A stretch of DNA of 44,929 nucleotides from NCBI RefSeq assembly GCF_001194135.2, contig NC_068983.1, forward strand, positions 37,512,156 to 37,557,084. The letters are read 5' to 3'. This stretch comes from Octopus bimaculoides (Eukaryota). Under the pieces are notes generated by a model. It had not been told where the DNA came from. It ran no database searches and saw only the letters and a program-made list of their open reading frames with translations. The translations under genes and the position numbers were made by a program. Shown one piece after another: positions 44,150-44,929 of the stretch (positions are counted from its first letter, which is position 1; each line of letters starts with the position of its first letter).

Positions 44150-44152
<3 letters not shown>

Positions 44153-44595
44153 ATAAAATATGGTAATTAATCATATATTAATTAATATCGATTAATTACC
44201 AGGAGGCTAGCACGTTTAAAGAATCAAAGAGATTCAGAAATAGTATCTGCAATCTCAGGGGATTAAGGTACATTTTTATATATAACGTTGACCACTAACG
44301 TGGACAATTAATGTGCTAGAAATAGATCACATCTTGTGTCTATTAAGACCTAAATTGTTCTCAACATGAAATATAGCAGAATACCAAAACATAAGCGGGC
44401 AAGATATTTAAAATCACCTTAAAAAACACATTATTAAACAGGGACCGGTTTCGGATTTAACAAATCTTACCGATTGTCTATTCCTCTTCAGCCTGATTTG
44501 TAATGTAACCGCAATCATTAGAATCGTATACAAAGTTGCCCACCGCCATGGGTGCACGTGTATATGGTTCTGCTAATTACAGCTTAATGGTAAAA
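44150..44595 (-). mobile_element. Penelope-like element LTR / retrozyme-like segment ending in (TA)n
   Basis: Contains the hammerhead and terminates in a (TA)n tract, like the 10.8-kb unit. No ORF is visible, so family assignment is inference. Confidence 0.55.
44436..44499 (-). ncRNA. Minimal type I hammerhead ribozyme motif (Penelope-type)
   Basis: Minus strand reads aaauCAGG-CUGAAGA-GGA..hairpin..UCC-GAAA-CCG-GUC|CCUGuuu. It has the conserved core, the G10.1-C11.1 pair, palindromic ACCGGU stem III, a GUC cleavage site and a 4+2 bp stem I. Confidence 0.85.
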
Positions 44596-44929
44596 TTCAA
44601 AAGTAATTTCCAACTTTCCCTCGCGGTACTTGTCGGCTATCGGACTCGTCCCTGTATTTAGCCTTGGATGGAGCTTACCACCCGCTTTGGGCTGCGTTCC
44701 CAAGCAACCCGACTCTCGGGCCGAAAAGAAACACCGCCGATCGCCGCCGGCTCCGAATGGGCCTGGCACCCGCTCTGGGCAGCCCCGATCAATGGGACTC
44801 TGAACCTAGCCGAACGGTGGCGTCGGGCGCGGACAGACCGGGTGTGTGTCCGTTCCGTTCGTTCGTCATCGTCCGTGCCGTTCGTTCGTTTCCTGCTGCT
44901 GCTGCCGCCGCTGTCAGGCTCCGTTACGT
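44596..44929 (-). rRNA. 28S (LSU) rRNA 5' fragment (D1 region to about the post-D1 core), truncated at 44596 and running off the window
   Basis: Reverse complement contains GAGTCGGGTTGCTTGGGAACGCAGCCCAAAGCGGGTGGTAAGCTCCATCCAAGGCTAAATAC...CAAGTACCGCGAGGGAAAGTTG, the conserved eukaryotic LSU core. It is GC-rich, unlike the rest of the window. It may be a dispersed pseudogene. Confidence 0.95.

Follow-up and report, generated by a model that had tools for sequence, protein, structure and literature searches.

A truncated 28S rRNA fragment abutting an AT-rich, hammerhead-bearing segment in Octopus bimaculoides: a possible template-switch chimera

At the end of a 44,929-nt stretch of Octopus bimaculoides DNA (contig NC_068983.1 of assembly GCF_001194135.2, positions 37,512,156 to 37,557,084; hereafter the window), a piece of 28S rRNA sequence stops abruptly and is followed, in the same sense, by non-ribosomal DNA carrying a hammerhead ribozyme motif. 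Does this locus represent a retroelement that resides in ribosomal DNA (rDNA) and is freed by its own ribozyme, a chimera produced during reverse transcription, or a mere neighbourhood of two unrelated repeats? Our tentative preference is for a one-off chimera of a 28S fragment and a hammerhead-bearing element of the Penelope-like element (PLE) or retrozyme type, located at a (TA)n microsatellite and made by a template switch, with nested insertions nearly as likely. The piece looks like a dead single-copy relic, that is, retrotransposition debris rather than a working system.

The last 810 bases of the window (44929–44120, read on the minus strand) form an isolated contig with four parts, separated from the remaining scaffold by a run of 897 N. 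An earlier sequence-only reading of this DNA had described a sense 28S piece continuing into non-rDNA that ends in (TA)n, and both this arrangement and all of its coordinates were confirmed on the minus strand. The features of the piece, in their order along that strand, are the following:

44864–44929, minus strand: GC-rich simple-repeat stretch of 66 nt, upstream of the 28S match and cut by the window end
44597–44863, minus strand: orphan 28S (large subunit, LSU) rRNA fragment, 61% GC (Rfam RF02543, 102.8 bits)
44597–44610, minus strand: junction zone over the A-rich tract GAAAAGAACUUUGAA, in which identity to 28S falls (alignments)
44150–44596, minus strand: AT-rich non-rDNA segment with the hammerhead, 447 nt, 33% GC
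44507–44585, minus strand: imperfect 79-nt hairpin directly after the junction (minimum-free-energy and centroid structures)
44436–44499, minus strand: type-I hammerhead motif (descriptor match), cleavage predicted at 44443/44442
44161–44201, minus strand: perfect 12-nt inverted repeat TGGTAATTAATC / GATTAATTACCA, a strong hairpin close to the segment's 3' end (repeat search and fold)
44120–44148, no strand: (TA)14.5 microsatellite (Tandem Repeats Finder), bordering the gap at the segment's 3' end
43223–44119, no strand: scaffold gap of 897 N (sequence)

The ribosomal identity of the upstream half is clear. The Rfam model LSU_rRNA_eukarya matches 44863–44619 on the minus strand over model positions 106–358 (102.8 bits, E = 1.6e-23), and the fragment contains the D1 expansion segment and the conserved core up to GGGAAAGUUG, that is, approximately nt 106–370 of the Rfam model. 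As 28S references we used rDNA from other public assemblies (L001 and L007) rather than the species' own rDNA; these genuine units, together with the orphan 28S fragments discussed below, were recovered via a search with the spurious open reading frames (ORFs) that 28S encodes. Over 44805–44597 the fragment is 85% identical, in blastn searches and alignments, to the genuine rDNA of L001 and L007 and to an orphan fragment of a cuttlefish (L006), its closest 28S relatives being decapodiform cephalopod rDNA at 85%. Furthermore, the 28S piece folds into a D1-like multibranch structure.

The sequence-only reading had placed the end of the 28S sequence at 44596. That the homology ends abruptly is borne out, since the blastn match to L001 stops at 44597 with no second high-scoring segment pair (HSP), and no resemblance to 28S was found after the junction, where 1271 of 2000 shuffles aligned as well to the real downstream 28S. 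Its exact position is less sharply defined. Universally conserved 28S positions are essentially perfect up to GGGAAAGTTG (44610), and the 15 nt preceding 44596, GAAATTACTTTTGAA, differ from the near-invariant AAAAGAACTTTGAA by three mismatches and one indel, so that the true break falls within 44610–44597; the similarity of this stretch to 28S is marginal, with 147 of 2000 shuffles scoring as well. The A-rich tract GAAAAGAACUUUGAA within this zone may be a microhomology at the join. We also considered that the hammerhead region might be decayed 28S, as cmscan in truncated mode placed the hammerhead on model positions 380–420 after a "111-nt insert"; the missing second HSP and the shuffles just mentioned rule this out.

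Nor does the 28S piece continue upstream in recognisable form. L001, L007 and another orphan-bearing contig, L004, all have the universal 28S 5' core (AGTAACGGCGAGTGAA...AGCCCA), which is unrecognisable at its expected place in the window (~44876–44900): when 44929–44864 was aligned with two real cores, 513 and 748 of 2000 shuffles were as good. Because the 5' core cannot be recognised there, the 28S piece appears to be a fragment of ~215–290 nt rather than the beginning of a complete gene. The heptamer GTAACGG at 44927–44921 was the only core-like bit, at roughly the right distance, and was rejected as a core remnant, the alignment of 44929–44864 not being significant. These upstream 66 nt contain (GCA)4, (AACG)n and a 19-nt unit that recurs at a distance of 23 nt. 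The sequence GCGGCGGCAGCAGCAGCAGG at 44893–44915 (minus strand) is the antisense of a low-complexity (GCT)n/(GCC)n repeat that L007 carries in its D2 segment (378–395), a match that may be meaningless or may hint at scrambled rDNA in the upstream flank.

The minimal hammerhead proposed for 44436–44499 has every element that had been attributed to it, including the palindromic ACCGGU and the cleavage site between 44443 and 44442. Stem I is formed by CAGG (44495–44492) and CCUG (44442–44439); the core consists of CUGAAGA (44491–44485) and GAAA (44452–44449); and stem II pairs GGA (44484–44482) with UCC (44455–44453), the G10.1–C11.1 pair included, and is lengthened by an inner ACAAUC/GAUU(U)GU hairpin, the insert amounting to 26 nt. 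Helix III is the palindrome ACCGGU (44449–44444), whose final U (44444) and the cleavage-site C17 (44443) belong to a GUC triplet. All positions of the catalytic core are present (C3U4G5A6N7G8A9 ... G12A13A14, A15.1–U16.1 and H17 at the cleavage site). In RNAfold, stem I extends to ~13 bp with internal loops, its first 4 bp being followed by a U.U mismatch.

Such a motif is not expected by chance in a sequence of this size. The strict descriptor found one site in the window and none in 300 Markov-simulated windows, and 200 Mb of composition-matched random sequence gave a single match, which corresponds to ~4e-4 expected per window. Moreover, G10.1–C11.1, the GUC triplet, the fully palindromic helix III and the long stem I are all features beyond what the descriptor requires. 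The ribozyme is most likely a genuine member of the PLE/retrozyme kind of hammerhead. Metazoan type-I hammerheads, like the variants that PLEs carry in their pseudo-long terminal repeats (pseudo-LTRs), are marked by a short palindromic helix III and by action as a dimer (PMC4209133), and single copies of such hammerheads cleave poorly or not at all in vitro (PMC4209133; PMC7229834). In the predicted monomer fold, helices I and II form and helix III, two base pairs closed by two nucleotides, is impossible; in the predicted homodimer, a 6-bp intermolecular ACCGGU helix III arises with helices I and II kept (-38.5 versus 2 x -17.6 kcal/mol). Since helix III is a 2-bp palindrome, a lone copy of this hammerhead should be nearly inactive.

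A comparison with the metazoan PLE and non-LTR retrozyme hammerheads (Cervera & de la Pena 2014, 2020) reveals the same type-I topology, the full catalytic core, G10.1–C11.1, a very short palindromic helix III that implies a dimer, and an AT-rich, self-paired host of a few hundred nucleotides. The octopus motif differs from them in its 26-nt stem II hairpin insert, in a stem I of 4 bp followed by U.U, and in the lack of any Rfam score. The context differs as well: metazoan non-LTR retrozymes consist of tandem 150–450-bp repeats, each with a type-I hammerhead, whereas here there is one 447-nt unit in single copy, with no tandem partner, no pair of pseudo-LTRs and no ORF for a reverse transcriptase (RT) or GIY-YIG endonuclease in view.

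The AT-rich segment that carries the motif, 44150–44596, resembles neither real 28S nor the remaining window. It holds no ORF longer than 47 aa and no tRNA-like head of a short interspersed element (SINE), and it has no tandem or inverted partner in the window, its other side being the gap. Its RNA is unusually self-paired (z = -3.26, with none of 100 shuffles as stable), and retrozyme RNAs are described as low in GC and highly self-paired (PMC7229834). The 28S piece has a ratio of observed to expected CpG of 1.23, and the segment one of 0.98. Elsewhere, 447-nt windows have a median of 0.26, and only 4% of them reach 0.98. The absence of CpG depletion in both halves fits one young insertion. 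The only other CpG-rich stretch, at 3.7–5.9 kb, precedes the exons of a G-protein beta gene, for which it may serve as a CpG island.

The name Penelope-like, which the sequence-only reading had given to this segment, is used here solely because of the ribozyme type and the (TA)n end. These two traits stood: (TA)n is a preferred target of the hammerhead-bearing Hydra-clade PLEs and of Naiads, the latter lacking canonical hammerheads (Craig et al., PMC8557442), and the (TA)14.5 at the end of the segment matches the PLE bias for AT-rich or (TA)n targets, being consistent with it and not specific. Other marks of a PLE did not appear, as detailed below. Together with the strong self-pairing and the lack of CpG depletion, these traits lead us to infer a young copy, which would be either a PLE pseudo-LTR truncated at its 5' side or a solo retrozyme monomer.

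How could the two halves have been joined? Our preferred explanation is that target-primed reverse transcription would have been inserting a hammerhead element of the Penelope-like or retrozyme kind into a (TA)n microsatellite and that, once the last ~447 nt of the element RNA had been copied, the reverse transcriptase would have switched template to 28S rRNA. The enzyme would have landed on the A-rich tract GAAAAGAACUUUGAA (~nt 370), at which both sequences are imperfectly homologous, and would then have copied 28S toward its 5' end. The product would read 5'-[28S piece]-[element 3' part with hammerhead]-(TA)n-3', with both parts in sense. In this scheme the hammerhead would be a passenger, able to act only by pairing with a second copy (ACCGGU/ACCGGU), none of which is visible here.

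Several observations speak for a single joining step, with the AT-rich segment as the putative 3' end of a retroelement. The 28S piece and the segment abut directly, with degenerate homology exactly at the join, and the 28S piece, in sense and 215–290 nt long, falls within the published chimera range of 50–482 nt. This range comes from 18 primate chimeras of 28S and LINE-1 (L1, a long interspersed element, LINE), with a median length of 269 nt; 28S forms the 5' side of these chimeras, and 83% are in sense (bioRxiv 10.1101/2025.02.02.635956). Like them, the octopus locus has a sense 28S piece of a few hundred nucleotides at the 5' side of what would be the 3' portion of a retroelement. Unlike them, its partner would be of PLE type, poly(A) is absent, no target-site duplication can be demonstrated (the 5' end falls at or outside the window edge, and the 3' side runs through (TA)n into the gap), and the piece comes from the 28S 5' domain, whereas the primate chimeras favour the region of nt 3636.

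A number of results weigh against the template-switch explanation. Where the explanation predicts (TA)n or a target-site duplication, upstream of the 28S match, there are instead 66 nt of GC-rich simple repeats. We know of no report of a PLE reverse transcriptase switching template onto rRNA; the integration mechanism of PLEs is still poorly known. No Rfam hammerhead family (Hammerhead_1, _3, _II, HH9, HH10) matched at E <= 10, either on 809 nt or on 96 nt alone, a miss that, at a guess, is due to the 26-nt stem II insert and the minimal helix III. A relaxed descriptor likewise turned up just one hammerhead in the window. The segment occurs there once, with no pseudo-LTR pair, and no ORF of at least 150 aa is long enough for a PLE gene, although no domain search was made. 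Likewise, no remnant of a telomerase-like RT or GIY-YIG domain was seen by eye in the translated pieces, again with no domain search, only Tc1/mariner and LINE-like fragments being present; the 897-N gap could hide further sequence.

Searches of public collections also failed to supply relatives of the element. Exact look-up returned none for three ORFs of the window, a search of 1.84 billion protein representatives gave no homologue for the 47-aa ORF that overlies the hammerhead, the hammerhead pattern was absent from viral contigs, and the junction 28-mer was absent from the prokaryote genomes of GTDB; in JGI metagenomes the hammerhead pattern gave two unrelated chance matches without stem I. 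Because these collections barely cover animal genomes, the lack of relatives says little.

The most serious competitor of a one-step chimera supposes two separate events, in which an orphan 28S fragment, either a retro-pseudogene or a scrap of rDNA moved at the DNA level, and a hammerhead repeat became neighbours by nested insertion or rearrangement, their shared orientation being a coin toss. This explanation, doubtful in itself, comes close to the template switch in likelihood, and it draws on the finding that orphan 28S 5' fragments lie in long non-rDNA contigs of three other genomes (L004, L005 and L006); stray 28S 5' pieces are commonplace. In L004 (ENA ctg235685), which belongs to an unrelated genome, the fragment at 4794–5125 covers ~nt 60–370, is preceded by (TTCTGA)n and is flanked by LTR-retrotransposon genes. 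It ends GGGAAAGTCGAAACGAA|TACAC, ~10 nt or less from the break in the window (44610–44597), and no hammerhead was found within 5 kb on either side. Since this hammerhead-free fragment ends at the same tract, the break may be a property of 28S fragments generally and not of this join, which is a further point against the one-step explanation. The A-rich tract GAAAAGAACUUUGAA may thus be a recurrent end point, by priming or template switching, of dispersed 28S 5' fragments, being found in two of four orphan fragments, a small sample.

The cuttlefish fragment in L006 (Acanthosepion pharaonis CAHIKZ030000190.1, 14430–14760), 96% identical to L007, is cut off on its 5' side within D1, stops in early D2 and is likewise trailed by AT-rich DNA and a long (TA)n tract. 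L007 itself had seemed to be rDNA interrupted at the same site (Rfam "model 24–358"); its 28S runs on into a divergent D2, and the apparent interruption is a local-alignment artefact. Overall, the dispersed LSU rRNA pseudogenes of L004 and L006 resemble the octopus locus in that a 200–330-nt piece of the 28S 5' domain is set in non-rDNA, AT-rich microsatellite DNA, and differ from it in having no hammerhead beside the fragment. Repeat-rich surroundings make a chance abutment plausible, and PLEs form a repeat class of considerable size in Octopus, for instance (PMC13282606). Against two events stand the exact abutment with degenerate homology, the shared sense and the equal lack of CpG depletion in both halves, each of these clues being weak alone.

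The cuttlefish contig offers some observations in its own right. Its 28S fragment is annotated, in antisense, within an "unnamed protein product", and two 5S rRNA copies lie 9–15 kb from it (23528–23645, plus strand; 29301–29418, minus strand). At 7729–7690 (minus strand), the relaxed descriptor matched CCCCUGAAGAUGAU...AUUGAAAGUACUUGGG, in which helix III is the palindrome AGUACU and A9 is followed by one additional nucleotide; the latter resembles the minimal hammerhead ribozymes (min-HHRs) of PLEs, and the match lies inside a 310-bp self-inverted stretch (7555–7864). This site could be a cuttlefish PLE hammerhead or a chance match to a loose pattern.

An assembly or scaffolding artefact, either a chimeric join of an rDNA read path with a repeat or a misplaced 810-bp contig, is an unlikely source of the junction. 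The piece is small, sits behind the 897-N gap at the window edge, and microsatellites stand at the contig ends of two gaps; moreover, both PLE-type insertions and rDNA break short-read assemblies (PMC8557442). The junction, however, lies within the contig rather than beside a gap, and the 28S part has its own differences from related rDNA. Only ~10 of 14 nt agree at the join, with an indel, a match too brief and too imperfect to have caused a misjoin through k-mers or overlaps.

Less probable again is that the hammerhead motif arose by chance and that the AT-rich DNA is ordinary intergenic sequence beside an rDNA scrap. The Rfam miss, the single copy, the lack of covariation evidence and the 26-nt stem II insert speak for it, as does the chance rate of 0.005 per Mb per strand, at which ~10 such motifs are expected per gigabase genome; the core pattern minus stem I was, in fact, matched twice by chance in the metagenome scan. 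The expectation for one window is very low, however, and the motif has extras that were not required of it (palindromic helix III, G10.1–C11.1, GUC, extended stem I) in a segment that is unusually structured and not depleted of CpG.

The sequence-only reading had also raised the possibility of an element inserted in rDNA and released from the RNA polymerase I (Pol I) transcript by its hammerhead, in the manner of R2. In its present form, this proposal of an rDNA-specific PLE or retrozyme at ~nt 370 of 28S, co-transcribed by Pol I and freed as R2 is by its ribozyme, which resembles that of hepatitis delta virus (HDV), appears very improbable. R2 and other R-elements share with the octopus locus a retroelement sequence in sense directly downstream of 28S and a self-cleaving ribozyme motif. 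The HDV-like ribozyme of R2 cuts at or adjacent to the 28S/element junction, whereas the ribozyme here is of another class and its cleavage site lies 154 nt inside the element, away from the junction at 44596; to our knowledge, ~nt 370 of 28S is not an R-element site. No HDV-like or other ribozyme family was matched in Rfam scans of the piece, and a lone dimer-type hammerhead should cleave poorly. The 28S is incomplete on both sides: its 5' core is unrecognisable upstream, it is not resumed after the junction, and beyond the gap, where the sequence-only reading had proposed to look for the remaining 28S, lie (TC)n, (TG)n and unique DNA of the locus that carries the G-protein beta gene, that is, ordinary microsatellite and unique sequence with no rDNA.

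The same proposal finds some encouragement in the sense orientation, in the L004 orphan fragment, which breaks at the same tract in another organism although no element is present at that break, and in a plant precedent. In Selaginella, PLE-X families that are endonuclease-minus (EN-minus) and carry canonical hammerheads target one fixed site in 28S (Craig et al. 2021, PMC8557442) and are the only known rDNA-specific PLEs (PMC8557442). Although both cases show a hammerhead-bearing, PLE-type element adjoining 28S, the PLE-X elements are multi-copy, site-specific and located in real plant rDNA units, whereas here there is one copy, in an animal, next to a broken 28S scrap. The idea that the piece is a decayed or partly assembled copy of an animal PLE or retrozyme lineage that targets the A-rich tract at ~nt 370 of 28S rDNA and rides on Pol I transcripts has the slightest chance of all. 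The evidence points instead to the other two alternatives raised at the outset, a template-switch chimera of 28S RNA and a PLE, and a chance adjacency or artefact.

The rest of the window is a repeat-rich locus with a G-protein beta gene. Exons of a G-protein beta subunit lie within 7429–13169 on the plus strand (7429–7620, 11367–11597, 12354–12629, ~12705–12917 and 12942–13169), with a best database identity of 94% and an annelid protein as the best named match (91%). A dispersed repeat marked by the translated motif LQLDALPNANHSKSVVGAF has at least six copies in the window (161–448, 21070–21309, 24850–25506, 27501–28394, 33235–33495 and 40655–40906); it is unrelated to the 44150–44596 segment and is probably a SINE family or a family of miniature inverted-repeat transposable elements (MITEs). 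Remnants of Tc1/mariner transposases (motifs FTDE... and QDGATAHP...) and a LINE-like fragment (YVHMDDG...WRNHYERLLN) occur at 28829–29447 (plus strand), 30022–30318 (minus strand) and 25048–25248 (plus strand). Microsatellites stand at contig ends at two of the four assembly gaps (27741–28139 and 43223–44119), namely (TA)n at 27.6 kb, (TC)n at 43160–43222 and (TA)n at 44120–44148; microsatellites at contig ends are typical short-read assembly breaks.

What the locus means depends on how the join arose. If it reflects adjacency or an assembly artefact, the piece is ordinary genomic debris, and under either reading the locus does not demonstrate ribozyme-mediated release from rDNA transcripts. 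An animal lineage targeting rDNA, if there were one, would parallel the Selaginella PLE-X elements and would be using a hammerhead in the way that R2 uses its HDV-like ribozyme. In any case, a textbook-perfect hammerhead core can escape all Rfam models when it has a long stem II insert and a dimer-type helix III. If the join was indeed made in one step, it would be the first hint that a PLE reverse transcriptase jumps onto rRNA as that of LINE-1 does, and would bear on how PLEs handle their templates.

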